Source of the DNA: Ylistrum balloti
Taxonomy: Eukaryota
Reading direction: 5' to 3'
Assembly: GCF_031769215.1 (NCBI RefSeq)
Contig: NW_026782361.1
Location: 744,001 to 808,000 of the forward strand
DNA length: 64,000 nt
A program made the position numbers and the translations under genes. Each line of letters opens with the position of its first letter. Position 1 is the stretch's first letter. The notes below the pieces were generated by a model. It was not told the origin of the DNA and ran no database searches. It was given only the letters and a program-made list of their open reading frames with translations. This document shows positions 18,004-57,559 of the stretch, in pieces.

Positions 18004-21000
18004 ATGGCTACTATTACGAAAACATACCGGGGCACATGGTCATTTTTATCATATATTAGGCGAAATGAAAAGAGAAATGCAGTTCTAACACGTGCACGGA
18101 ACACTGAACCTTCTCAACAGTTAAGATTTTGCAGTTCAAGGGGAACAATTAACACCAGTAATCGGCAGTATTGCCTTGATTTGATACAGTGAGTTTGACA
18201 TTGCTTCACCCTGTCATAGATCTAGTGTGAGGTTGGATAATTCGTACGGTTCTCTTTTCCTTGATAAAAGTTTGCTATAGCAACACTCTAAGGTGATGTT
18301 AACAAGTACAGTGTCAATGTTTGATTTGATCCAACCGAGACCTTCATTTTGCATATTGCAATTAGGATTTTGATGATAGGTGTTAAAACTGATGATCGTG
18401 ATGTGGTTTTGAAAATGTTGAAGGTTTCAAGGAGGCCAATTACAATGTACTTGTGAGTTAATGCGTCTACTTAGGTGAAATGCAGGGAGTGGGTAGGGTG
18501 TTCCCAGACAGATGAGCAATATTGATACTGAAATCATTTGGCCATGTCATTTTCACATTGGAGACTTAGGTTTAATTCCATTATGGACAGCTGACAGAGA
18601 TGTGTGTTTTCCCCGTTCTTTTATATAGACTTAACCTATTATTTGCAAAAAGCCAAAGAGTACTGAATTTCCTGTAACCTGATGACAGGTCATTGATATA
18701 GATAAAGTATAGAATTGGTCTGAGAACTGTGGTGGGAAACACTTTGACTTATATATGGATAAAAAGTTCTTTTTTTAAATGACTGCTATTTCATTATTTT
18801 CAGAAAGTTTGACCATGAAAACTTTCTATGCACTCTTCTTTACTCAAAATCTGCACGAGAAGCTGCTATTGCCATCAGAGCCTTCAATGTAGAGATTGCA
18901 CAGGTGAGTTAAAACATAACATATTCAAATCCCTTGGTAGTTATTCCAATATGAAGAAATACAAAGTACATTCATTAAGAATTTTTCAGTATAAAAAGAC
19001 ATATCTATGATGCTATATGGCATTTCACATTTTATGATATGTAGCTTTATTCAACAAAAGCAGATATATTGTTGTTAAAAGGTTACAAAACAATAATAAT
19101 AATATTTTTGTAGTCTTCAATTGTAATAATGTTTTGGAAGTCTTTAATTATAATAATAGTTTGGTAGTCTTCAGTTACAATAATATTTTGGTAGTCCTCA
19201 GTCATAATGTCTTGAGATATTTCTGTAGTGAAGTCCATGAATACATAATTGAAGGAAAATTATCAGATCAGATAGTATAGTATAATTATACATGTGTTTG
19301 ATGAAGTTAATTTAATTAACATTACTAGTCACAAAAACATAAAAATCCTAAATTACCATTCTTGTAAATTAAATAACAAGGTTTTTTATGATTTAGAATT
19401 TTACTTGTTCTGGTAGGTTCAGGATGTTGTCTCAGACAAACAGCGGGGAGCTATGCGAATGGTGTTTTGGAGGGATACCATCGAAAAGATATACCAGGTA
19501 AAAAACATACCAGTTAACCTTCATCACTACAATAGATTATAAAATATCATTACAGGCATATGTGTTACACCTACTGCGATGACCTAGTTATACTTCATCA
19601 CAGGAGGTAAACAGATCATTTAACCTACATACAGGACAGAAGTTTATCAGATGTATGTACTATACCTAGAATGCTGTTTTCTTTGATGTTCATCAATTGA
19701 GATAAACTATTCAGTGACCATTACATTATATATAGACTGATAACCAATTTTGTATACATGTTATGTTGTTTTGTTTTGTGCTGTGTTGTGTACCTCGTAA
19801 TACAATATACTGGTGATCAGACATATCTATATTAACTGTATATCAGACATATACTGGTGATCAGACATATCTGTAATAATACTATATCAGGCGTATACTG
19901 GTGATCAGACATATCTGTAATAATACTATATCAGGCGTATACTGGTGATCAGACATATCTGTATTAACTGTATATCAGACATATACTTGTAACCAGACAT
20001 ATCTGTAGTTATAATTACAGATCCTACAGGGTAATATTTCACTCCATTAATACCAAGTTTTTCCATTTCAGGGCTCCCCTCCCCAACAACCTATAGCACT
20101 GCAGCTAGCCAAGGTATAGTTATGTACAAGACAATTAAATTCAACCCATGTCCATCAATATGTTAATAATAATCACTGTTTTTAGGAAACTCTTCTTTTC
20201 TGTTATGGCAAAATATCTCAAGTTCTGTAATGCCAGTTGCATTCAAACTTTAACAGATTCTACTCCAAAGGAAGTTTTTGTGTGGGTGTGATTTTTAAAG
20301 GTAAAAGTCACTATTAGTATAGAAAATTTGTTTTTGCAAAATATCTCATTTGTTTGGATGATTACAATCAGCCTGTCTCCCATGGTTTTTCATAGGCAGT
20401 GTTAACCCTTTTTTCACATTTAAAGGTTAAGTTCATCATTACTATAAATAGAAATGCAAATTTACATTTAAAGGTCACCAGGTCAAAGATGAAGGTCAAA
20501 TTTGAAATGCTTATATCTCATGTGCATATAAAGCAATTATCAAAAATTCAACATCATTGTAACACTTGACATCATTCGTTGATATTTATGTAATTAAGGT
20601 AGGTAAATGTACTTCATATCTGATTGGCCATAGTGTAACCATTCTTTATTCTTTAACCAGACTTTAGTTTCTTTATGAATTGAACATTGAAAGTTAGGAA
20701 GATAAATTCCTTGAATTTGATTGTTTTTTCTGTTTTAGGTCATATCTGAGAACAAGCTGACAAAAAAGTGGTTCATGAGGTGTATAGATGCCAGGGTAAG
20801 TCCTTTAAGGTAAATCACCATTACAGAGATGAGGTGTGTAGACACTGTCTCCTTTACTTTGAGGTGAGGGTAAATCACCATTACAGAGATGAGGTGTGTA
20901 GACACTGTCTCCTTTACTTTGAGGTGAGGGTAAATCACCATTACAGAGATGAGGTGTGTAGACACTGTACAGAGATGAGGTGTGTAGACACTGTCTCCTT

Positions 21001-24000
21001 TACTTTGAGGTGAGGGTAAATCACCATTACAGAGATGAGGTGTGTAGACACTGTCTCCTTTACTTTGAGGTGAGGGTAAATCACCATTACAGAGATGAGG
21101 TGTGTAGACACTGTCTCCTTTACTTTGAGGTGAGGGTAAATCACCATTACAGAGATGAGGTGTGTAGACACTGTCTCCTTTACTTTGAGGTGAGGGTAAA
21201 TCACCATTACAGAGATGAGGTGTGTAGACACTGTCTCCTTTACTTTGAGGTGAGGGTAAATCACCATTACAGAGATGAGGTGTGTAGACACTGTCTCCTT
21301 TACTTTGAGGTGAGGGTAAATCACCATTACAGAGATGAGGTGTGTAGACACTGTCTCCTTTACTTTGAGGTGAGGGTAAATCACCATTACAGAGATGAGG
21401 TGTGTAGACATGTCTCCTTTACTGAGGTGTGAGGTGAGGGTAAATCACCATTACAGAGATGAGGTGTGTAGACACTGTCTCCTTTACTTTGAGGTGAGGG
21501 TAAATCACCATTACAGAGATGAGGTGTGTAGACACTGTCTCCTTTACTTTGAGGTGAGGGTAAATCACCATTACAGAGATGAGGTGTGTAGACACTGTCT
21601 CCTTTACTTTGAGGTGAGGGTAAATCACCATTACAGAGATGAGGTGTGTAGACACTGCCTCCTTTACTTTGAGGTGAGGGTAAATCACCATTACAGAGAT
21701 GAGGTGTGTAGACACTGTCTCCTTTACTTTGAGGTTAGGGTAAATCACCATTACAGAGATGAGGTGTGTAGACACTGGGATATGTCTCCTTTACTTTTAG
21801 GTTAGAGTAAATCACCATTACAGAGATGAGGTGTGTAGACGCTGGGGTATGTCTCCTTTACTTTTAGGTAAGGGGAAATCACCATTACAGAGATGAGGTG
21901 TGTAGACGCTGGGGTATGTCTCCTTTACTATGAGGTGAGGGTAAATCACCAATACAGAGATGGATTAATATAAAAGCACTGAACTGTCTCGTTTTGGCAT
22001 TCATGGTCAATATAACTGCCAGAGATTTTTTTGGCAAACATTAAAGCGGAAATTACCTTAGATTTCAACATCGGGAAATGGAGAATTCGGCTTATGAATA
22101 ATGAAATATATCCATAATAAAGAGATACACAGGGCTATAACGTAAAATATGAATAAATTATTCAACAAAATAACCCCTCAAGTGGAACAGCATTTTTAAT
22201 AGGAAATTGTCATCATTTCTATCCCAACATCATGTGTTTAATGACATTTATTGTTTCTGAAATCACACATATTTTGGTACTTTATGTACTTTTCAGCACT
22301 ATTGCTGTACACCTGTAAGTACCTATTCATAATTACATCAATATTGTAATATGTGTCCATGCTCCACTCAATATCTTTATACTTGTAGGCGGACTGTCTG
22401 GAGAATGATTCCTTCAGATCTATAAATGACCTTGAGGATTATTGTGAAAACTCAGTGTCATCAGTCATGTACCTGATCCTAGAAAGTTTGGGTAGGTTGT
22501 GTTATGATGTCTTTATAGTCAGATGGCCATAAAAACCCATGTCAATCACACTTAAAACTGAATTTGTGCTGCTCCAACACATCTAGTGTAGATGGATGCT
22601 AATCCTTAACTGGGGCTATAGAAGGGTATTTTTTCAGCAAGATAATAGATTGTTAACTAAGCTAGAAATTGAATTAAATTCTATGTACTTTAAAAGATAG
22701 TAAAACTTGTCAACATTTTGGTGTGTTTTTGGTGCTGTAAGTAAAGATATATTCAAACTGTGAAGAGTAACAGAGTTATCTTTACTCTGATCTGGAATAT
22801 TTTGTTGTCTAGGTATAAAGGATCTCCATGCTGACCATGCTGCCAGCCACATAGGACGTGCCCATGGCTTAGTGACCTTCCTCAGAGCTATTCCATTTAA
22901 CACCAGTCGAGGCCGAATCAATCTACCAACAGAGTTACTCATAAAGGTGTATATTTCTGTCATGTTTTAAAGAACCCAAGGTTATTTTTTCATAACCAAC
23001 ACAAATTTTGTCTCTCTTATGAAATATATATAGAATACATGGTCAATGTCTTAAAATAAAAGCTGTATTTTGGTGAGGGTGAAGAAAGCTAAAAATGGTG
23101 AGTCTTTGGCAAGATGCCTTTGTGTTTCTGCCACAAACCAAAATGCAGCTTATATTTTAAAATACTGACCATGTATTCTATTTATGCTGCAACACGGATT
23201 GAAAATCAACTTCAACTGTTTAGTATACCAATCTTTGCTTGCCTGATGTTGACATTATGCTGAATTTTGCCTAATGATTTACACAGAACTAATTTCTCCA
23301 TGCAGAAATATAGTTCCAAACTTTAAAGTGTATACCGGGGTAACAGCAATTTTATGAATTAAGAAATAAACTTGTTCATTGCAATATGTAAACTCAATCA
23401 TTGCTAAAATACAACTGTTTTTGCTGTCACTGACAAATACAGCAAAAATATATGAAGCAGGTGTATTCCGGCAATGGCTGTGCCAGTCGCAGGATACAAA
23501 GGTTTACAGATTTCTGTCACAATTTGATGAGATATACTGAATTTTCCACAAACAGCATGTATTTTCTCAACTTTGAACCAGGCAAAATATTACGCATTCA
23601 TGGTCCTCGTTACAGGGAAATATGAAGTTACATTTTCTGAATGTGTCATAACTCCAGAAGATAAAGAAATCTTCATATCTCAGTAAAATTAGAGCCATAA
23701 ATTGTATGTTATACCAAAAACATCATAAACACATTTTGAGTTTATAAACCAGGATAAATGATCTACAAAGTAAATAACATCAGTATACTCTATGAAACTG
23801 TTTACAGAAACAGATTGTTATCTTTGTATTTTATCCTTTGTTTTGTCAGATTATCTTACTTATGGTACTTGATTTTGATTTCTTTGACATCGTAAGATAA
23901 ACATTCAATGTTATTTTTACTTTCACAGTACAATGTGTCACAAGAAGATGTATATCGAGGGAAGAAGCCTGACCTTGTCAATGACATTGTGTATGATATT

Positions 24001-41310: not shown

Positions 41311-43423
41311 TCAAGTTGACTTTGGAGTGGACTTGCGAGGAGCCTTCAAGAACCCAACTCTACGTAGGTACTGCACGATGAATGGTGTTGCAGTGAGTGT
41401 GATTCCAATTCGAACTGGGGCAAACACTTTGTGTACAGCATAGGCAATGACAAATGTGCTAGCACCTGCAGCCACCTTTGATTGGGAAATGCTCTCTCCT
41501 ATTCCAACCTTAGTCAAGAGTCCAACGACGTCAATCCCACTGCAAAGAACAAATATTACTCATACAGAAACTTATCATTCAGTTTTATAATACAGGAAAT
41601 TCAATAAATATTTATTCAGAGTTCATCAATGTCTAAATAAAACCACTTACATGTCACTGGTCTGATCAATAATGAACGGACCCTTATCTAAAAAAATTGT
41701 AAAGAATACAATGGAGGGCAGCTCGTTTAATTGTCAACAAGTAAAAACCTTTAACCTTCCTGTTCTTACATTGTCAAATTCCAAGATGGCTGCCTTTCAG
41801 CCATTTAACTTTTCAAAAATGTAAAGAGGACATCTAGTGACAAATGGGAACCTACATATGGATCCATCCATCAATTTTCTTAAAATTGCAATATCAAACT
41901 TTCATTGTCAAATACAATACAACTAAGAATCAAGGAAAAGTGTCTGATGAAATTTAAGAAAGACCAATCCAATTCTTTTCAAGAAATAGTGATAGCAATA
42001 ATTGTTCTCATTCAAATGACAGACCAGCATACCATATCTGATGATAATGGGCTAAAAATATGTTAAATAAGATAATACTTCCTCTAATATCAACATGTTC
42101 TGAAAAATTATGATGCAATATATACTTAAGTAAATAAACTTTTATCTTAGTGTAACTCATTGATATATATGATCTACACCAGTTTCTCCCACCAAATCAA
42201 ATATACCTTGACACCAAAGCGTAGAACCCTCCAAGAGACATCAAAGCAAGGCTAACATGGAAAATGATCACAGTGGAACCATATTCTGCTATAGCTTTCT
42301 TTAAATTGGCCCTGGAATATTTTGCAGAATTGTCTAGGCTTTGATCAGATTCAGGTGGGTTGTTACCAACCTCTTGTGAATCTTGGTTTTGTTTTGAGGT
42401 TGAATAATGCCTCATTTGTTGACAACCAATTACAAATGAGTAAATGGTTTGGTCCTGTTGGTTAAAGATTCTGGATGAACTGTTGTTCCTTATCTTGAAC
42501 CATTGTAGATTTTCTTTACGATATTTGTGAAGGTGAAACCCATTACAATTTTCTAACCATAGTCCAAATGTTATGTCATCGTTGGCCTGGCTACTGCATA
42601 ATGCAGAAACATCCATCGGTGTATCTGGAGATACATTGGATTGGTGACTCCAAATACTTTTTCTATTTCTTTCTGCTGTGTTTCGAATGATTTCCTCTTG
42701 TTCCAAGAAAACATGAGCTTGAGTTTCCATTCCAAATTGATTATATTTTTTATCGTAGTTTTTAAGCCCATAACCAACACCTTCAATACCTTGTGATTTC
42801 ACAGAATTATCAATGAATGCACCATGGTAATTTGGTTGTGTATCTTGAGACAGATGTTGAACGCCTACATGAAAAGAACGTCTTGGAGGCTGTGAACTAT
42901 TGACATCATTTCGACCACCTGATATATATTTCTGATATAGTTTTTTGCCATTTCCTGGCATGTTTTGTGGTGTACCGTGATCCAGCTGTGAAGTAAAGTG
43001 GCCAGACTGAACTTTATATGGGTCTGGAACATTCGTCTGCATACATCCATGCAAACTGATGTTTCTGGAATATGAATAGTTCCGAATATTTTCTGGAATT
43101 TGAGAATCAACGACGTTGGTAGCAGACGCATTTCCTAAAGCAACTAATTCATCGTGTCCCCCCTGAATCCCTTGTACACTTGGGCCATGTATCGAGTATT
43201 CTATTGCCTCTTCCAAAATCTTCCGAGATTCCTCAGCTGAAATATCTCTATCGGGGCCTTGGACACCTTCTATCGTCGGATAATTGCTATCATTCTGACG
43301 TTCATCAGCAAAGGCATGACGTGATGCCACTTTTGTTTCATGAACAGTTATCACCGATCTGTTTCTTACGCCACTTACAGTTAGCGCTACCTTCCTGAAC
43401 GAGATCATTTTCCTGACTGACAT
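41311..43423 (-). CDS. FAM210B: FAM210B (DUF1279) mitochondrial membrane protein with long N-terminal extension, 2 exons, 481 aa
   Basis: Exons (-): 43423-42207 and 41539-41311. C-terminal LKKAIAEYGSTVIIFHVSLALMSLGGFYALVSSGIDV...SKVAAGASTFVIAYAVHKVFAPVRIGITLTATPFIVQYLRRVGFLK matches FAM210B. Confidence 0.92.
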
Positions 43424-46034: not shown

Positions 46035-49000
46035 CCAAATATCCACAAGCCAAGCTATCCATTACGACCGATTGTGGACAGCACAAGGTTAATCGGATAC
46101 AGTGTATCAGGATGACTAGCAGATATCCTGTGGCAGCTTCTGGGGAAAATAACGATAAAGTATCAATATGGCCGGTAAACATCCTCAGGCCACTTGTGGG
46201 AAAACACAACCTCACGTGAAAAACTCAGAAGAGGCGACAATTTTTAGGGTTTTGTGAAATCATCATATCTTCTCTCCTATAAGGCCACATGCGGCGTGGT
46301 TGACCAAATTCCAGGTACATCGGTGAAACTGGACGAAGATTTGGCACACGCATCAAGGAATATAAAAAATAAGTTGTCAAAACTGAAAGCAAGTTATACA
46401 CTAAAATACCAGAAATATACTAGGAAAAGGACACGATTAATCAGCCATCACACACCATATAATGGACTGGAGCAGCTCGAAGGTAATGGAAAGAAAGGAT
46501 CACTAGAAACTGAGAAAGACGAAGAAATCTGGATAAGGGAGGAAGGAGAACTGATAGATAGAGAAGAACGAGGCACGAACTGATAGATAGGGAAGAATGA
46601 GGCACGAACTGATAGATAGAGAAGAATGAGGCACGAACTGATAGATAGAGAAGAATGTGGCACGAACTGATAGATAGAGAAGAATGAGGCACGAACTGAT
46701 AGATAGAGAAGAATGAGGCACGAACTGATAGATAGAGAAGAATGAGGCACGAACTGATAGATAGGGAAGAATGAGGCACGAACTGATAGATAGGGAAGAA
46801 CGAGGCACGAACTGATAGATAGAGAAGAACGAGGCACGAACTGATAGATAGGGAAGAACGAGGCACGAACTGATAGATAGAGAAGAACGAGGCACGAACT
46901 GATAGATAGGGAAGAATGAGGCACGAACTGATAGATAGGGAAGAATGAGGCACGAACTGATAGATAGGGAAGAATGAGGCACGAACTGATAGATAGAGAA
47001 GAATGAGGCACGAACTGATAGATAGAGAAGAATGAGGCACGAACTGATAGATAGAGAAGAATGAGGCACGAACTGATAGATAGGGAAGAATGAGGCACGA
47101 ACTGATAGATAGGGAAGAATGTGGCACGAACTGATAGATAGAGAAGAGACACGAACTGATAGATAGAGAAGAATGAGGCACGAACTGATAGATAGAGAAG
47201 AATGAGGCACGAACTGATAGAGAAGAATGAGGCACGAACTGATAGATAGAGAAGAATGAGGCACGAACTGATAGATAGAGAAGAATGAGGCACGAACTGA
47301 CAGATAGAGAAGAATGAGGCACGAACTGATAGATAGGGAAGAATGTGGCACGAACTGATAGATAGAGAAGAGACACGAACTGACAGATAGAGAAGAATGA
47401 GGCACGAACTGATAGATAGAGAAGAATGAGGCACGAACTGATAGATAGAGAAGAATGAGGCACGAACTGATAGATAGAGAAGAATGAGGCACGAACTGAT
47501 AGATAGAGAAGAATGTGGCACGAACTGATAGATAGAGAAGAATGAGGCACGAACTGATAGATAGAGAAGAATGAGGCACGAACTGATAGATAGAGAAGAA
47601 TGAGGCACGAACTGATAGATAGAGAAGAATGAGGCACGAACTGATAGATAGAGAAGAATGAGGCACGAACTGATAGATAGGGAAGAATGTGGCACGAACT
47701 GACAGATAGAGAAGAATGAGGCACGAACTGATAGATAGAGAAGAATGAGGCACGAACTGATAGATAGAGAAGAATGAGGCACGAACTGATAGATAGAGAA
47801 GAATGAGGCACGAACTGATAGATAGAGAAGAATGAGGCACGAACTGATAGATAGAGAAGAATGAGGCACGAACTGATAGATAGAGAAGAATGAGGCACGA
47901 ACTGACAGATAGAGAAGAATGAGGCACGAACTGAGATATAGGGAAGAATGAGGCACGAACTGACAGATAGGGAAGAATGAGGCACGAACTGACAGATAGG
48001 GAGGAATGAGGCACGAACTGATAGATAGAGAAGAATGTGGCACGAACTGATAGATAGAGAAGAATGAGGCACGAACTGATAGATAGGGAAGAATGAGGCA
48101 CGAACTGACAGATAGGGAAGAATGTGGCACGAACTGATAGATAGAGAAGAATGTGGCACGAACTGATAGATAGAGAAGAATGAGGCACGAACTGATAGAT
48201 AGGGAAGAATTTGGCACGAACTGACAGATAGAGAAGAATGAGGCACGAACTGATAGATAGGGAAGAATTTGGCACGAACTGACAGATAGAGAAGAATGAG
48301 GCACGAACTGATAGATAGGGAAGAATGAGGCACGAACTGACAGATAGGGAAGAATGTGGCACGAACTGATAGATAGAGAAGAATGAGGCACGAACTGATA
48401 GATAGAGAAGAATGAGGCACGAACTGATAGATAGAGAAGAATGAGGCACGAACTGATAGATAGAGAAGAATGAGGCACGAACTGACAGATAGAGAAGAAT
48501 GAGGCACGAACTGATAGATAGAGAAGAATGTGGCACGAACTGACAGATAGAGAAGAATGAGGCACGAACTGATAGATAGAGAAGAATGAGGCACGAACTG
48601 ATAGATAGGGAACAATGTGGCACGAACTGACAGATAGAGAAGGATGAGGCACGAACTGATAGATAGAGAAGAATGAGGCACGAACTGACAGATAGAGAAG
48701 AATGAGGCACGAACTGACAGATAGAGAAGAATGAGGCACGAACTGACAGATAGAGAAGAATGAGGCACGAACTGACAGATAGAGAAGAATGAGGCACGAA
48801 CTGATAGATAGAGAAGAATGAGGCACGAACTGACAGATAGGGAAGAATGTGGCACGAACTGATAGATAGAGAAGAATGAGGCACGAACTGACAGATAGAG
48901 AAGAATGAGGCACGAACTGATAGATAGAGAAGAATGTGGCACGAACTGACAGATAGAGAAGAATGAGGCACGAACTGACAGATAGAGAAGAATGATGCAC

Positions 49001-49500
49001 GAACTGATAGATAGGGAAGAATGTGGCACGAACTGACAGATAGGGAAGAATGAGGCACGACCTGACAGATAGGGAAGAATGTGGCACGAACTGACAGATA
49101 GGGAAGAATGAGGCACGAACTGATAGATAGGGAAGAATGAGGCACGAACTGATAGATAGAGAAGAATGTGGTTCGAACTGACAGATAGAGAAGAATGTGG
49201 CACGAACTGATAGATAGAGAAGAATGAGGCACGAACTGAGATATAGGGAAGAATGAGGCACGAACTGACAGATAGGGAAGAATGAGGCACGAACTGATAG
49301 ATAGAGAAGAATGAGGCACCAACTGATAGATAGGGAAGAATGAGGCACGAACTGATAGATAGAGAAGAATGAGGCACGAACTGAGCCATCTACATGATCC
49401 CCATGTTAACAACCAACATGGGATGAAACACCCACTGTCCCTCTGACTGGCTGCAGCATAAGAGTGTGATTGGGACGAAATAGCATCGTGACAATTTCAC
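46035..49500 (+). mobile_element. Internally deleted Penelope-like retroelement (RT N-terminus plus GIY-YIG) interrupted by a minisatellite
   Basis: PNIHKPSYPLRPIVDST...LADIL and ILRPLVGK..PHVKNS (PLE RT N-terminus, 46035-46230); YIGETGRRFGTRIKEY from 46316; SAITHHIMDWSSSKV; EIWIREEG. After the array it resumes as ELSHLHDP. The RT catalytic core is absent; stops and frameshifts are present. Confidence 0.85.
46548..49384. repeat. 29-bp minisatellite, ~98 copies
   Basis: Unit GAACTGATAGATAGAGAAGAATGAGGCAC, with variants GACAG, GGAAG, TGTGG and ACGAGG. The 29-aa periodicity of the minus-strand ORFs equals 3 units. Confidence 0.98.
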
Positions 49501-49961
49501 AGTTGACTTAACAGTTTTGTCATTCGCCAAATACTGAACTGATGTCTAGACTCCTTTGTGTTTAAAATAAACATCTTCTTACAGTCTTCTTACTTCTTAC
49601 TGGTTAAGAGAATGTTTGTTGTACTTTTTAAATTATGATTTCCACTTGAATTACAACAACCTTTTTATGTCATCTAGAATTGAAAACAAGGTAAATGATA
49701 ACAGATTTTTTTTATTTTTTGAATAAACACGGTGCCAAGAAAACAATTGATTGTAAGTTAACAACTACAAAAAGCTAGTGAACACTCCACTGTCAGCAAT
49801 TAGTAATGAACATCGCCCTCACGTTTCTCCTCGCTGGCTAACGTACATCCTGACTGCTAATGTGTTTCTTTCTGAAAGCAAATGCATAAACAAAAAAGTT
49901 AGGAAAGGAAATAGAAAACATGCATGCTATTCTAAAGTCCTATTACACAAGGTTCATAAGT

Positions 49962-50125
49962 CATATGGATTCCTATCACACACAAGTCAAGAGACATCTG
50001 GATTCCTATCACACACGAGTCAAGAGACATCTGGATTCCTATCACATACGAGTCATGAGACATCTGGATTCCTATCACACACGATTCAGAAGTCATCTTT
50101 TGTCCTATCACACACAAGTCATGAT
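49962..50125. repeat. 33-bp minisatellite (~5 copies)
   Basis: Unit GGATTCCTATCACACACAAGTCAAGAGACATCT. Confidence 0.9.
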
Positions 50126-50519
50126 TCATCTGAAGTCTCTTTTTTGTTATAGTGATTAAAATTTCAGAAAATGTATGTTATAAATATGTAAACATGGATA
50201 GAAATTTACATACACGTGCAAAACGTAATCCACATAAACTAGCCTAAACCGGAACAAGCGTCGTTTTTTGTCAAACTTCAAGTTACCATGTGAATTTCTT
50301 TCTGGTTAGGACAGTTCTATGATATTGAACGTGAAATACATTGACAGTGTTGTTTCTTAAACCTCCTTATTGAAATAGATCTTGATTATTGGCATTCGTA
50401 ATCACCACCATAAAATACTTACAAAAAGTCCATCACCACCACCATTCAGTGAACCTAAAATAAACAAAAGAGTGAGTTAAACTGATGATTGCTCACCGAA
50501 AACAATTTTATTGGAAACA

Positions 50520-51325
50520 GAATTATAACAAAAGGCAATAATTATGTAATTCAAGGGGTTCAGGCATTGAATTTGGTTACACTGTTACAAAGGACACTAA
50601 ATCTGTAATAATGTGGTTGCGGCCACTGGTTTTGGAATACTGAACATCATTTTTCATTATCCTAGCTTTAATACAAGCAAAGTTATGAACCGGACTTAAA
50701 AGAAATACAAAAGGGCAATAACTCTGAAATTAAGATGTCACAGTCCCTGACGTCGGGACACTGAACATTGCGTTTGTATACATCACTTTCAATAACGTTG
50801 TTTAAATGCATGCCCGTGATGCTTTTCATACAAAATGTTAACATATGGCAATGGCTCTGTAATAAAGGGGTTGCAGACCAGGAGGTTTGTACACTGCACA
50901 TCCTCTTAATAATATTAATGTATATATTAAGTTTGATTATCCTAGTTTAAATGCCAGCAAATTGAAGTTGTCCTCTAGATTCGGAATTTTAACAAAGGTC
51001 AATGAAGTAAGGGGTTGCGGGCCTTCAATTTGGTACACTGCACATAGTCTTTGTATGGCTAACATATACACGAAGTTTCATTATCTTAGTTTAAATGTTC
51101 CGTACACGAAATTTTAACAAACGACAATAACTCTATAATTGAGAGGTTGCAGACCCACAATTCGGTATACTGAGCAGCTTAGTGTGACCTATGTATACAC
51201 AAAGCTTCATGATTCTTCCTTAACTGTAAGTAAAGTTATGCTCTGGACCCGAAAGGACGGGCGGAGAGACAGACGGACGGTCAAGGTGAGGACTATATGC
51301 TCATCCGAAAATTTTCGGGGAGCAT
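50520..51325 (+). mobile_element. HINE / pearl-like non-autonomous element with internal core repeats
   Basis: About 4 diverged cores containing GGTACACTGCACAT and TATCCTAGTTTAAAT, an (ACGG)-type microsatellite at ~51255-51280, and a 3' palindrome CCGAAAATTTTCGG within GCTC...GAGC at ~51300-51323. This layout is described for bivalve pearl/HINE elements. Confidence 0.6.
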
Positions 51326-51574
51326 GAAATGTGCATAGAAATATATATATATATATATACATGTATATCACAACACATTGTAAGAATACATACATTCCCT
51401 CAAATATATAGTTGTACGGCCCTGTGTTGTTACACCACCGAACTGATGATAATAAAGAAACGGTATGGAGTTACATCCTAATGTTGAGCGTTTCATAAAC
51501 ATAAGTATGATATATTTAATGCTTCACAAGAATGAATACGAAGGTAAGAGAATATTGAATTAGAGAAGTCTTAC

Positions 51575-54500
51575 CAGAGTCGGAGAATGCACCAAAGCTG
51601 TCGATAGGGACAATTCCCATCTGGTCTAAGCCGCCTAGTCCAAGGTCTTTTCCTCCGAGTCCACCTCCAAAATCGGCATTTTTACCGTGTCCAAAACCCA
51701 AATCCACATTTCCGTGTCCTAGTCCAAGATCCCCATTTCCTTTTCCAAATCCCAAATCCACATTTCCGTGTCCTAGTCCAAGATCCCCATTTCCTTTTCC
51801 AAATTCCAAATCCACATTCCCGTGTCCTAGTCCCAGATCCCCATTTCCTTTTCCAAATCCCAAATCCCCGTTTCCATGTCCTAGTCCCAGATCCCCATTT
51901 TCGTGCCCCAATCCGAAATCTCCAATTCCCATGCCAATAGATCCATGTCCAAAGCCCATATCAGCTGCTCCAAGCCCTACACCACCAACTGACCCTGTAG
52001 ATGATGAATATTACAATTAAATACAAATCTTATCTAGTAGACCCTGTAGTAGACTTTGACGAGATTCTCTATAATTAACATTTACCAAATCTGGAAATTA
52101 ATTCTCAAATTTGAACTAAAGATAGTTGTGCAAGAACTTCCCACGAACACTTTTTTCACAGTGAGTTAGTTTCTTGACACAGGAATTATACTCTAACAAT
52201 GTTTGATATGCATGTCTTCATTTGCGGCTATTAACTTTCGTGACTTTGTCTGGATTGCGAAATTCGTGAAATAAAATCGCACAAGAAAAAAATTGTTTTA
52301 CAATGTAATGTTTGAACATGATTGAACGTCTACACTGGAATTATAAAAACGTTCATATCTGTCTTCTCGTCACATCAATTATGGTCCTGTAAATTAAGAT
52401 ATTTACGCGAACAGTTTGTAGACATCGGAATCCGTTTATTAAGAATACCAACAAATGAAAGAAAATAAACTCCCACGAAAATAATGTTCAATGTAATTCA
52501 ATTGATTTTTCACACCAAGTCAAAGACAAAAAAATTACCTGACAGTTGTTGTGCCACTGGAACAGGGTTGTTCACAACAACGGTGCGGTCACGTGGCACG
52601 ACCTGCTTTACAGGTACCGGGTTATTTACTAAAACTGAGAAGTTCAACAGGGTTAAGCAATTTTTTGAAATTATTATTATTATTATTATTAACATTGGGC
52701 GATATTAAAATCTAATGGTAGTATCAAAACCATGTGGTTGAGTGAATGCCTACTGAGCCAAATAAAACCAAATGGTTAGCACAATATGAAAACATGTATT
52801 GAAGAATGAGTTATGTAAACGAAATACACGTAGTTGATACTATCTGTATCTGTTGCATTTGTGTACCTGCCTTCTTGTATCTGTGGCATTCGGGTACCTG
52901 CCTTTCTATATCTGTGGCATTTGTGTACTTGCCTTCCTATATCTGTGGCATTTGTGTACCTGCCTTCCTATATCTGTGGCATTCGTGTACCTACCTTTCC
53001 GTATGTCATTTGTGTGCCTACCTTTCTGTATCTGTGGGACCTTCTTTGTCAGCACTACCGTCTGGATCTTGGGAACTTTAATGAAATTAACATCGATAAC
53101 TACATCTGCATGGATCACAGCTATTCCAGTTATCTGGATATTTTCTAGTAACCTTATAACAATGCAGTTTAATCGTCAAAACTCAATTTGCCATTGATTC
53201 AATTATTTATAACATTAGTAATAAGTGAATAATTAAAAACGGACTTTTTAATGTTCAAAAATTCTTTTGAAATGAGATTGAATTGTTCCGATGTTTATCA
53301 TAGAATTATCAATTCATTATTAAATAACATAATATTCGGAAATGCGTATTCACACTATTTACTGTCACGTCGCTACTTACCTTGTTTCACCATTACATCT
53401 ATTGAAAATAGACAAAAGGTAAATTAATACGAATTCATGTATTTGTCTCAAAACAAATCATATGTGGAAATTTTGTTGTACATAAGCATTTCAATGTACA
53501 TGTATTATTAAATATGATAATATTACATACACGAAGCACTCGATAACTTAGACGACATTGAATCACACCGCATGTTGCGGTTCAGAATACCTATAAGCTT
53601 GGCTCTTGGTTATATCACTTGTTCGTTAATTAAAAATACAATTTTACTCAGCAAAGTGTTGTTGTAATACGTTCCGTATCCCAAATCTAATGCACTTCTC
53701 ATTTAAATAAAACAAATTACTAAGTATAAAATAACAACAATCCGTAACAAGTTGTCAGTAGCCTTATTCCCTCAATGACTTATTTAGTAACGTGATAGAA
53801 ACATTAAACGGTATACTTACGATGTCTGTTGATGACAACTGGAAAGAAATACACATCATTACTACAGAATGGTTTAGATATATCGTAAGTCTAACGGAAA
53901 CACGTTCAATCTTCAATGCTTTAGATATATCAGTATAACAGAGGCACATAGTTACTCTATATTGGTTAAGATATATCGTAATTTTATCAGAAACAGTTAC
54001 TCTACAATGATTTAGATATATCGTAAGTCTAACAGAAGCACATTTATTCTACAATGTTTTAGATATATCGTAATTCTATCAAAAACACAGTTATTCTACA
54101 ATGGTTTAGATAAGTGAAAAATCGAGATACGTTCAAAGTTTAAAGTTTTATCATAAAAAAACTGAAATATTGTATTTGTTATAAAAATATATTTCTATAT
54201 TTATGGATACGCTGTCAAACAGATTTCGTGTCATGATTATAATAGATAACACGAAAATGATGACAAACAAAACACTTCTATACTTACATGGTCTTTTAAC
54301 TTGAAACGCTGAAAAAAAGAACATATCATATGTAATTCATTGTAGTGAGATGTAAGTGCTACTTCATTGTAAAGAGATAAAAGTGTTCGACACCCTCAAA
54401 TTACACATTATTATTTCATCAATGATTCCCAAGAAGGCTAATTATTTAATTCAGTTACTTCAAAACTTTATTTGAAAATCCTGTCATTGTCCATCATCTA

Positions 54501-56900
54501 ATTGCTTCTGACCTGTTCTAAAAATAATTAGATTAACATACTATAGTCAAACCCTTGAAAAAAATAATTTTTTCTTGTCATCTTTTAAAATGTTTATCTG
54601 AAATATTCACGAGCTTGTTCAATTCTATTTTGGTGAGTAATAATGATAATGATGGCGTAAGTGACGTCATACAAACTGTAGCGATAAATTAACATTTCGC
54701 AACAAAACCTAAGACAGAAAGGCTTTACCAGCATGCGTACCCTCCTCTTTTTTTGTTATTGCATCTATATTTCGGAATAATACTTTGGACATGCAACCTT
54801 GAGTTCATCATGATATATGGGCTAACAGCAAGCAGCAGTTTAATACAATGATAAATGTGCTGAGTAGTATCTAATTATGATACCTTGTGATTGATTAATG
54901 TATACACATTATTGTAATACTAACACCTGAGGACGGTGTATTACCGCTGACCTACCGTCCATCTATCAATCAGACAGACATGTGTGAGGAGTTCAGATGA
55001 TTGTTTCTGGGTTAGCATTGATAAATCACTTAAGTTGTTGCATTCACAGCATTATCGTGCGTCGTGTTTTCCCTGTTGTATTTCGGTATTCTTTCACAAA
55101 AAAGGATATTTATAAAAGCTATTCACAAAAAAGGTATAAGAAACGTCCTAGGTGCACTGAATATAAGTTATATTTCATACTTTCAACTTTTTGTAATGCG
55201 TTTACAGGAGATTTGTGAAAAGAAAAAGGAATTTGAACAAATTCGATTTGCATGGATTTTGACTTCTAAAATTATCTGTTATATGCTGCATTTCCCCGTC
55301 TAGATTTTAACGTTTCTTTCGATCACTTTGGATTTTCCCTATTTGCCTCTTAGACTTAGGCCCTCAGCATCGCTGACGAGTCCCAAAAGGACGAAATAGC
55401 TGTATGATGCAGTTTAAGTCATTGTTTGGCTCTGCTGTAGCAAATCCAAATTGGTATTAAAATGTGATATTCATTTGTGTCTTTTGTTTTTTAGCGTAAA
55501 CAAACGAGAGAATAAAAGAAAGAAGAGAATGAATTAAAGGTCAGTCCCATGAATTAACAGCCACCGAGTCCGTTATCATAGAGTTGAATAAAGTGAAAAA
55601 GAGTTAATTGGAAAGACTTTTGCAGGTTGTAAATGAATGAGCATCAATCTCAGACATATCGCTCAAATAACCAATTATTTTATACAGGGAGTTTAATATG
55701 TGTAAAAATTTCAAGATGAAGAAACTTGTTCAAGAAATCATACATTTACAAAATAGCCATTGCATGTCATGTCATAAAAACGTGAATATCTTAACACCTA
55801 ATCATCAGCATATCACACTTAGACACCAAGTCAGGAGAAATGAGATATGTATAGGAATTTACTGAATATGGACAATTTTACGAACATACAAGAAAGCATC
55901 ATCGACTCCGAAGGCAGGTTCCCACCTTATTACGGTGTGTGATATGATATGCGTAACCCATCAATGTTCTCATTTGGTTAATTAGTGACCATTAGGGTTA
56001 CAAAAATGAGTGAAACAAAAATGATAATGATTGTAATAAAAATAATTCTAACAAAGTTCAAGTCCATCATAGACCGTATGAAAACATTCAGAAAACGACT
56101 GTCCTCATTGATTTACAAAAACAATTATAAAACTACTCACGTGTAGGTACAGAAATTGAGAAATTACTACTTACGCATAGGTACAGGAACTGAAAAATCA
56201 TGTTAAATCATATCAAAACATTGTATGAGATTCTTACACTTTGCATATTACTTTCCGTTACAGATATAATTACAGATATGAAGTATTGCATTTAAACAAA
56301 TATACCAAAGGTTTGCATGCTGTGACGTCATTGAAAACATATACTCTAAATCCTTTAAACAATACTATAGACACGTTATTTTAATGCCGTTCATGGAAGT
56401 AAACATCTATAGTATATATCTACCAATTAGAAGTTTGTAAAGAAGGGAAATTGTCCATTGATAGATAAAAAATGTCAAGGAGGAAAAACTGACCTATTTT
56501 TGTGAAAACACGTCTTCGATAGCCAACTGTAAAATAGATAATGGAAAAATTAGCAATAACAAGATATCAAGCATGAAAATAATTAACCAATATTCGAAAT
56601 GAACACCTTTATAAGTGATATGTATAAGTAAAAGGATTTACTCACATCCCTCGGAAGAACCTGAAATACAAAAATAAAGATATTTAGAAATTGTTTCCAT
56701 TATGAATAAAGCAAGAGTGACATTTCAATTTTTGTGTAATTAGCTTGAAAGTTATTTTCTATTTGTTTGAATGATTAATTAATTCCGCATATCGAAATTG
56801 AAATTTCTACTAAAATACACATGCCGTTATATCCTATTAGGATTACAGCCCACATACCTGCCGCTAGGGCAATCACTATTAAAAGCGCTACACCGTTCAT
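51575..56900 (-). CDS. Uncharacterised secreted Val/Pro-rich plus Gly/Asp/His-repeat protein encoded by micro-exons (C-terminus unresolved)
   Basis: Exons (-): 56900-56858 (MNGVALLIVIALAA), 56660-56646 (15 nt), 56189-56175 (15 nt), possibly 54553-54542 (12 nt, AAG acceptor), 54308-54288 (21 nt), 53838-53821 (18 nt), 53398-53381 (18 nt), 53144-53022 (acceptor could instead be 53120), 52634-52539, 51994-51575. All introns are phase 1. Protein: MNGVALLIVIALAAGSSEG-FPVPM(RFDYT)FQVKRPFVINRHHVMVKQ...VPKIQTVVLTKKVPQIQKVLVNNPVPVKQVVPRDRTVVVNNPVPV...(DLGLGHGNG/DLGFGKGNG)x9... A strong donor follows 51575; read-through would stop at 51516. Confidence 0.82.
52848..53040. repeat. 31-bp minisatellite (~6 copies) containing exon 3' end plus donor of the secreted-protein gene
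   Basis: Unit ATCTGTGGCATTTGTGTACCTGCCTTCCTAT; on the minus strand CCACAGATACAGAAAG|GTAGG is the true junction. Confidence 0.9.
53860..54112. repeat. ~53-bp degenerate tandem repeat (~5 copies)
   Basis: Recurring TTTAGATATATCGTAA...CTACAATG motif. Confidence 0.75.
55367..55410 (+). ncRNA. Minimal type-I hammerhead ribozyme
   Basis: Stem I GCATCG (55367-72) / TGATGC (55405-10); core CTGACGA (55373-79); stem II GTCC-CAAAA-GGAC (55380-92); GAAA (55393-96); short near-palindromic stem III TAGCTG; cleavage triplet GTA (55402-04). Confidence 0.85.
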
Positions 56901-56959
56901 GCTGACAGTTCTCCGACTGGACTCTCAAGGACACTGTGAAGCAACAATCCAACACTGGC

Positions 56960-56970
56960 CTTTTATATAG
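56960..56970 (-). promoter_or_regulatory. TATA box of the secreted-protein gene
   Basis: CTATATAAAAG on the minus strand, ~25-30 nt upstream of an Inr-like TTCACAGT and ~60 nt upstream of the ATG at 56900. Confidence 0.75.
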
Positions 56971-57559
56971 GTCAGGAGGCAGGTGTATTACTTACAATTT
57001 GATTATATTTACTTCTATACATCGAGACATTCATTTGACACCTTTGTCTAAACGGAGATGGTTCAGTATACTTGCAAGATGGTGAGTCGAGTGTCAGAGA
57101 CATGACATTTTTAGTACCGATACATCCTTTGGCGTGTATTGCTCATAAACCAACATGTACAACCTCAATGCATATCCACATCTCATCAACAGATATTACG
57201 ACTTGGCGAAAACTTCATGATAGTCTTAGTGAGTTGTGAATTATTGAACTTGTCAGGCTTTGTGGTATTCATGCTTTGACTGAAGCATGTATCAGATGAA
57301 TAAATGTCTTTAGGTCTGACAGACAACGAACAAAAGTCTATATGAGCTTTTTTAACCCTGAAGCTGTGGGATTTTACAGCGTAAACTAGAACTGTCATGG
57401 TAAGGATAACTAAACTTGAGACGCAGTTTCGATGATTTAGTTTCAGTCAGAGTGACCTCAAAGTAGTTTGTATAAGATTAATTTCCCTCGACACATACCA
57501 TCCCCTTGTCATGCCCTATCTTACAAGGGTTACCACTTTAACGTTAAGAGTTTTCTACC

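Follow-up and report, generated by a model that had tools for sequence, protein, structure and literature searches.

Micro-exon genes (MEGs) of schistosomes have coding regions formed mostly by very small symmetric exons. They evolve fast, have been reported as restricted to platyhelminths, and give rise to variants by differential splicing. In tropoelastin the internal splice sites are all of phase 1:1, which allows removal of single exons in a cassette-like manner. Among low-complexity proteins of bivalves, abductin is about 136 amino acids long and contains 58% Gly and 1% Pro, and a shell protein of Perna viridis annotated as valine-rich protein-like contains 18% Gly, 17% Val and 11% Pro. 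Valine-rich proteins are also present in the larval and prism shell proteomes of Pinctada. The gene described here has traits in common with all these systems. It is located on the minus strand of a 64,000-nucleotide (nt) stretch of the genome of the scallop Ylistrum balloti (RefSeq assembly GCF_031769215.1, contig NW_026782361.1, positions 744,001 to 808,000), called hereafter the window, to which all positions refer. It is a real and conserved scallop gene made of 12 exons, probably coding for a secreted disordered matrix protein and probably including its micro-exons mainly in a constitutive fashion. Its product is an uncharacterised member of a kind already known, namely secreted low-complexity proteins confined to one lineage.

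Direct reading of the minus strand from 49.5 to 57.5 kb, combined with the computation of phases, resulted in one continuous model of 12 exons (Table 1). The joined coding sequence, 777 nt in length, is a single open frame for 259 amino acids. All introns are of the GT...AG type, and all exons are bordered by YAG at the 5' side and GT at the 3' side. Exons 2 to 10 are in phase 1 at both borders, and exon 11 alone shifts the frame to phase 0. Five or six symmetric phase-1 micro-exons of 12-21 nt had been described in the initial annotation of this DNA. Six are indeed present, all in phase 1, but they range in size from 15 to 33 nt. The donor is GTAAGT in four of the six. Altogether micro-exons account for 120 of the 777 coding nt (15%), exon 10 alone for 54%. 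The other parts described at the time were also found. The TATA box was located by direct reading, the signal-peptide exon corresponds to exon 1 and agrees with the hydropathy profile (a heuristic assessment), the Val/Pro block spans exactly the junction of exons 8 and 9, and the Gly-rich repeat exon is exon 10, the joined phases confirming that all exons belong to one open frame. The position proposed for the end of the gene had to be abandoned. Position 51516 marks only a read-through stop, exon 10 having a donor at 51575 followed by the conserved exons 11 and 12.

For comparison, the region around the FAM210A-like orthologue was taken from Pecten maximus (L015) and from Argopecten irradians (L016); both regions end inside the micro-exon gene. 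A gene on the same strand, annotated and lacking Pfam matches, is found in both species directly upstream of the FAM210A-like gene. The annotated products are 332 (P. maximus) and 344 (A. irradians) amino acids long, and both genes run past the end of the locus. By blastn, introns of Y. balloti do not align with those of either species. The only islands detected are short and collinear. Those of P. maximus correspond to exons 6-12 and the 3' untranslated region (UTR), and those of A. irradians to exons 5, 6, 8, 10, 11, 12 and the 3' UTR; exon 7 and a diverged exon 9 of 93 nt were located by eye in the latter species. AG and GT sites are retained in every compared exon (exons 5-12, two other scallop genera). 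Exons 5-8 have the same length in the compared species, and so does exon 9 in P. maximus (96 nt in both, with indels in multiples of 3 only); exons 9, 10 and 11 otherwise differ by multiples of 3. Exon 5 retains AG and GT in A. irradians and features three changes, all synonymous and at third positions. Exon 6 is 89% identical to its P. maximus counterpart, and is conserved in A. irradians too. Exon 7 is conserved in both species, and encodes LMIKQ in P. maximus and ILVKH in A. irradians. Exon 8 is 87% identical in P. maximus, six of the seven changed codons being synonymous. Exon 10 orthologues share 62-64% identity. Exon 11 is 35 nt long in P. maximus and 29 nt in A. irradians, and AG and GTAAGT are retained. 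The annotated coding sequences of both species end at a TAG aligned with the exon 12 stop, and the block at 49774-49695 in the 3' UTR is 78-84% identical to the corresponding P. maximus and A. irradians sequences.

Substitutions are not evenly distributed among codon positions. In exons of equal length, differences at positions 1, 2 and 3 are 6, 0 and 10 in the comparison with P. maximus, and 11, 2 and 20 in that with A. irradians. The pooled values, 17/2/30, correspond to a chi-square of about 24 and to P of about 6e-6 (hand calculation), with the proviso that the Y. balloti branch is common to both comparisons, which are not fully independent. By this measure, the coding sequence is under purifying selection in the predicted frame. 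The lengths of the annotated products were also informative. Subtraction of the 869 coding nt of exons 6-12 from the 332 x 3 nt of the P. maximus gene leaves 127 nt, the same number obtained by summing exons 1-5 of Y. balloti. In A. irradians the remainder for exons 1-4 is 115 nt, compared to 106 in Y. balloti, a difference of three codons. On this arithmetic, the orthologue products are of lengths that require the micro-exons. Exons 5-12 are directly, and exons 1-4 indirectly, supported by the comparison of sequences. Micro-exons as small as 15 nt can thus be validated by comparative genomics alone, through splice sites, codon-position bias and orthologue length arithmetic. The suggestion that automated annotation would miss much of the gene proved wrong for P. 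maximus and A. irradians, in which orthologues have been called with lengths that fit all the micro-exons.

Micro-exons were confronted with splice motifs expected by chance. Candidates were defined by a YAG acceptor with at least 7 pyrimidines in the 12 nt upstream, a length of 9-60 nt, and a GTNAGT donor. Background was provided by the plus strand over the whole window (64 kb), with 33 candidates, about 0.5 per kb; 5 of these (15%) combine symmetry with an open frame in phase 1. Nine candidates are found in the minus-strand zone spanning from exon 1 to exon 8 (3.8 kb), which corresponds to an approximately 5-fold enrichment in density. Six of the nine are the micro-exons of the model, every one of which has both properties, and two of the remaining three only reuse one of the model splice sites. 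With p = 0.15, at least 6 out of 9 would occur with a binomial probability of about 6e-4 (hand calculation), and the enrichment in density comes on top of this.

Minisatellites are abundant in the window, a tandem repeat whose period is a multiple of 3 yields an open frame for free, and no match was found in protein databases. The whole structure could accordingly be imagined as a coding-looking minisatellite open reading frame (ORF), formed by a 27/54-nt repeat, which happens to lie beside chance splice-like motifs and is not a gene. Such an explanation is hardly credible, because eight exons and their splice sites are collinear in two other genera within introns that cannot otherwise be aligned, because substitutions are biased by codon position, and because orthologous gene calls end at the aligned stop and encode products of matching length. 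On these comparisons of sequence it is effectively refuted.

The composition and the charge of the predicted protein were calculated by summing values exon by exon. Exon 1 encodes MNG followed by a hydrophobic core of 11 residues (residues 4-14, mean Kyte-Doolittle value 3.27). Small residues come next (AAG/SSEG), and the cleavage region of the signal peptide is probably located in exon 2. The 90 amino acids encoded by exons 2-9 are rich in Val, Pro, Lys and Gln (24% Val, 12% Pro), include repeated VP-IQ and VNNPVPV motifs, and have a net charge of +13 (15 Lys and Arg residues versus 2 Asp and Glu residues). The 140 amino acids encoded by exon 10 contain 36% Gly, 13% Leu, 11% Asp and 7 His, and have a net charge of -12. 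They are organized in units of 9 residues, in which GDLGLGHGN alternates with GDLGFGKGN, so that His and Lys alternate, and terminate with a tail, conserved across orthologues, that includes DQMG[IV]VP. A short Gly-rich tail closes the protein after this domain. Lys residues are scattered through the Val/Pro block and recur in every second 9-mer, and KA/KP domains are absent. The whole protein (259 amino acids) contains 23% Gly, 5% Pro, 6 Met, 1 Tyr and no Cys. AlphaFold2, run on exon 10 with the alignment of the three orthologues, gave a predicted local distance difference test (pLDDT) value of 38 and no confident beta-roll, as expected for a disordered repeat, and was otherwise uninformative.

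The gene is organized as the schistosome MEGs in that a signal-peptide exon is followed by very small symmetric exons set between long introns, the skipping of which is frame-neutral, and in that the product is predicted here to be secreted and disordered. It differs from them because micro-exons make up a minor part of the coding sequence, the bulk of which is supplied by the single 420-nt repeat exon, because it is under purifying selection as measured by the pooled substitutions, and because it is hosted by a mollusc and shares no homology with MEGs. It was not assigned to the MEGs in a strict sense: the coding region is not formed mostly by micro-exons and its evolution is not accelerated, though a signal peptide is heuristically predicted. 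The symmetric micro-exons might still be skipped in combinations, as in MEGs, to give secreted variants with different mature N-termini. Exons 2-10 are all of phase 1-1, so the removal of any subset would keep the frame, and the cassette splicing of both tropoelastin and schistosome MEGs uses the same design; the duplication of exon 4 with its donor, and the donor-like minisatellites found after exon 8, speak for dynamic exon borders. Diversification of this kind is nevertheless unlikely. Number, length and peptides of the micro-exons are conserved in three genera, and second codon positions are nearly invariant, unlike in the fast-evolving MEGs. Donors close to the GTAAGT consensus are typical of tiny exons that are constitutive. 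Micro-exons contribute few coding nucleotides, and the longest annotated product of P. maximus includes every one of them. Conservation, strong donors and the P. maximus product make constitutive inclusion of the micro-exons more likely, as far as can be judged from genomic sequences. It is rather improbable that micro-exons act as regulated cassettes, different ones being skipped in different zones of the mantle or life stages in order to tune the cationic N-terminal module, with the minisatellites at exon borders involved in the control of splicing. If this were true, the gene would represent a MEG- or elastin-like generator of isoforms in a mollusc biomaterial gene. The significance attributed to the gene in the initial annotation is to be lowered on both counts, as sister species already call the gene and isoform diversification has so far found no support.

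Similarity to tropoelastin concerns the phase 1:1 borders shared by all the exons from 2 to 10, and the type of product, a Val/Pro/Gly-rich low-complexity protein, predicted to be a secreted matrix component, which contains Lys. Tropoelastin is a vertebrate family, to which the scallop protein has no sequence homology, and no alternation of KA/KP cross-linking domains and VPGVG-type domains was recognised. The Gly domain is moreover acidic (11% Asp) and includes His and Asn, and exons are much smaller. Abductin is secreted by scallops by means of a signal peptide, as is predicted also for the protein described here. In both, a short non-repeated N-terminus precedes a Gly-rich short tandem repeat containing Phe, and a random coil is predicted. 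The product of the micro-exon gene is longer (259 amino acids), its 9-residue repeat contains Asp, Leu, His and Asn, and its N-terminus is basic and rich in Val and Pro. Identity with abductin was ruled out, since type of repeat, content in Gly, Met and Pro, number of Cys and size all differ.

Low-complexity proteins of the bivalve shell matrix, either valine-rich protein-like or of the KRMP and shematrin types, similarly feature a signal peptide, dominance of Gly, Val and Pro, and repetitive domains. KRMP-type proteins also join a basic block to a Gly-rich block. With the tools used, the scallop protein has no detectable similarity to any of these, and its repeat is Tyr-free and carries Asp, His and Asn. 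The RTX nonapeptide repeats of bacteria (GGxGxDxUx) have the same period of 9 residues, with a Gly-rich hexapeptide that ends in Asp and is followed by hydrophobic residues. Gly residues are differently placed in the scallop units (GxGNGDLG[LF]), and no confident beta-roll was predicted. The protein was not placed in the RTX beta-roll family, since its Gly residues follow another pattern and AlphaFold2 returned an unstructured model, and the resemblance may be taken only as a lead for Ca2+ binding.

The succession of a signal peptide, a cationic block (+13) and an anionic block (-12) is compatible also with a precursor of bioactive peptides. Bivalve precursors of linear cationic peptides have a similar layout. 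The cationic N-terminal part, or pieces of it cut at RRR or KR, would be an antimicrobial or signalling peptide, and the anionic Gly/Asp domain a neutralising pro-region. Basic clusters are present in exon 3 (RRR) and in exon 5 (KR), the latter conserved in A. irradians, but KR is followed by Pro, which is a poor context for convertases. No other part of the protein is as long or as well conserved as the supposed pro-region, which consists of a regular 9-residue repeat; these traits suit a structural or ion-binding role better. Amidation signals and Cys are absent, and no similarity to known peptide families emerged from Pfam and from the exhaustive search of representative proteins. On balance, processing into peptides is quite improbable.

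A constitutively spliced gene for a secreted matrix protein is the reading we favour. The signal peptide would be cleaved, and the protein secreted and intrinsically disordered. It would then enter the extracellular matrix, most likely the mantle-derived matrix of shell, ligament or periostracum. A role in one of these structures is plausible, judging from composition. On the same compositional grounds, the Gly repeats bearing Asp and His may be binding sites for Ca2+, mineral or metal ions. The cationic Val/Pro block could associate with anionic partners or with the acidic half of adjacent molecules, which would lead to self-assembly of a block polyampholyte. The micro-exon array would be the frozen outcome of exon duplication in a gene of 1-1 phase, and not a device for variation. 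Some points weigh against this reading. The signal peptide was assessed by eye and by Kyte-Doolittle hydropathy. Comparative support to exons 1-4 comes exclusively from the arithmetic of orthologue product lengths. Exon 9 has strongly diverged in A. irradians, and the Val/Pro motif is thus not strictly needed. None of the searches used revealed a resemblance to named proteins of shell, ligament or byssus. The gene provides one more, apparently scallop-restricted, secreted candidate for the matrix of shell, ligament or periostracum, with an unusual bipartite charge. Should the protein belong to such a matrix, its regular Gly repeat, bearing Asp, His and Lys, would be a simple module for ion binding or self-assembly.

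Exon 9, exon 10 and the locus as a whole are single-copy in the 648-Mb genome, in which only intronic repeats recur. No Pfam domain was detected in exons 9 and 10. The open frame of exon 10 had no protein match in a word search, and the ESM Atlas gave no usable match. An exhaustive search of 1.84 billion representatives retrieved, because of the Gly-rich period of 9 residues, only proteins with unrelated 9-residue repeats, as checked by eye. A word search with exon 10 of A. irradians found nothing, and missed also the annotated 344-amino-acid product of the same species; the protein searches used thus seem to be blind to this family, and their blank results prove neither novelty nor missing annotation. 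Six short motifs of the protein, looked for in the literature, were found in no paper. In Mytilus galloprovincialis and Solemya velum neither a called gene nor a credible exon 10-like sequence was found less than 10 kb away from the FAM210A-like gene; a single weak tblastn match in Solemya (E about 1e-4) was judged negligible. On this limited evidence, drawn from sequence comparison, the gene looks restricted to scallops. The protein had been proposed to be lineage-specific, and so it appears, no Pfam domain, no relatives and nothing similar at the syntenic site of Mytilus and Solemya having been found.

Table 1. Features of the micro-exon gene of Y. balloti. Positions are those of the window.
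Feature	Positions	Strand	Phase	Encoded residues or sequence	Remarks
Candidate TATA box	56962-56969	minus		TATATAAA	62-69 nt 5' of ATG; read directly
Exon 1, coding part, 43 nt	56858-56900	minus	ends in phase 1	MNGVALLIVIALAA	ATG at 56900; signal-peptide n- and h-regions; GTATGT donor
Exon 2, micro-exon, 15 nt	56646-56660	minus	1-1	(G)SSEG	tttcag acceptor, GTGAGT donor
Exon 3, 33 nt	56494-56526	minus	1-1	(F)GYRRRVFTKI	ttacag acceptor, GTCAGT donor
Exon 4, micro-exon, 15 nt	56175-56189	minus	1-1	(V)PVPM	tttcag acceptor, GTAAGT donor
Exon 4, second copy	56141-56155	minus			GTGAGT donor kept; CAA where the AG acceptor would be
Exon 5, micro-exon, 21 nt	54288-54308	minus	1-1	(P)FQVKRP	
Exon 6, micro-exon, 18 nt	53821-53838	minus	1-1	(F)VINRH	
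Exon 7, micro-exon, 18 nt	53381-53398	minus	1-1	(H)VMVKQ	
Exon 8, 54 nt	53022-53075	minus	1-1	(V)PKIQTVVLTKKVPQIQK	
Exon 9, 96 nt	52539-52634	minus	1-1	Val/Pro/Asn block	two VNNPVPV motifs
Exon 10, 420 nt	51575-51994	minus	1-1	9-residue-repeat domain and tail	tail with DQMGIVP; GTAAGA donor at 51575
Exon 11, 32 nt	50423-50454	minus	1 to 0	(G)SLNGGGDGLF	
Exon 12, coding part, 15 nt	49857-49871	minus		KETH	TAG stop
3' UTR	49695-49856	minus			conserved block 49774-49695; AATAAA 49716-49711

Repeated sequences occur at several places in the gene. Exon 4 and its GTAAGT donor are tandemly duplicated with a period of 34 nt (56132-56198, minus strand). The second copy lacks the AG acceptor, and is accordingly a pseudo-exon. 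Its donor, if used, would give rise to an exon of 49 nt, and the frame would be broken. A minisatellite formed by 6.3 copies of a 31-nt unit extends from the 3' end of exon 8 into intron 8 (52847-53037, minus strand), and repeats a donor-like AGGTAC core. At the beginning of intron 8 of P. maximus (L015, 845-960) an array of 5.8 copies of a 20-nt unit similarly features a donor-like AGGTAC core, and no such array is found in intron 8 of A. irradians. These minisatellites could work as splicing decoys or as splicing enhancers, or be mere slippage-prone sites. Another minisatellite, with a unit of 47 nt repeated 5.3 times (53868-54112), stops a short way 5' of the exon 6 acceptor, and 5.2 copies of a 33-nt unit are located in intron 11 (49938-50132). 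Intron 4 hosts a dispersed repeat of about 200 nt (55284-55488), many copies of which are found in the genome at about 79% identity. A longer dispersed repeat, about 0.6-0.9 kb in size, is inserted in intron 10 (50461-51329), and dozens of copies, 67-76% identical, are located on other contigs. It is probably a short interspersed nuclear element (SINE)-like or other transposable element. No Rfam family reached the gathering score in the 49400-57300 interval.

The coding part of a FAM210A-like (DUF1279) gene begins with the adjoining ORF of 408 amino acids (42200-43423, minus strand), which matches an uncharacterised Y. balloti RefSeq protein of the FAM210A-like kind with 100% identity. P. maximus and A. 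irradians have the FAM210A-like and micro-exon genes in the same order and orientation. Repeated ORFs, open on both strands, are found at 20941-21805, where a tandem array with a period of 63 nt (21 codons) is probably a minisatellite and not a gene. Most of the gap separating the 3' end of the micro-exon gene from the FAM210A-like gene is filled by a minisatellite made of about 98 copies of a 29-nt unit (46548-49384, 94% matches), which is responsible for the strong skew towards purines on the plus strand in this interval.

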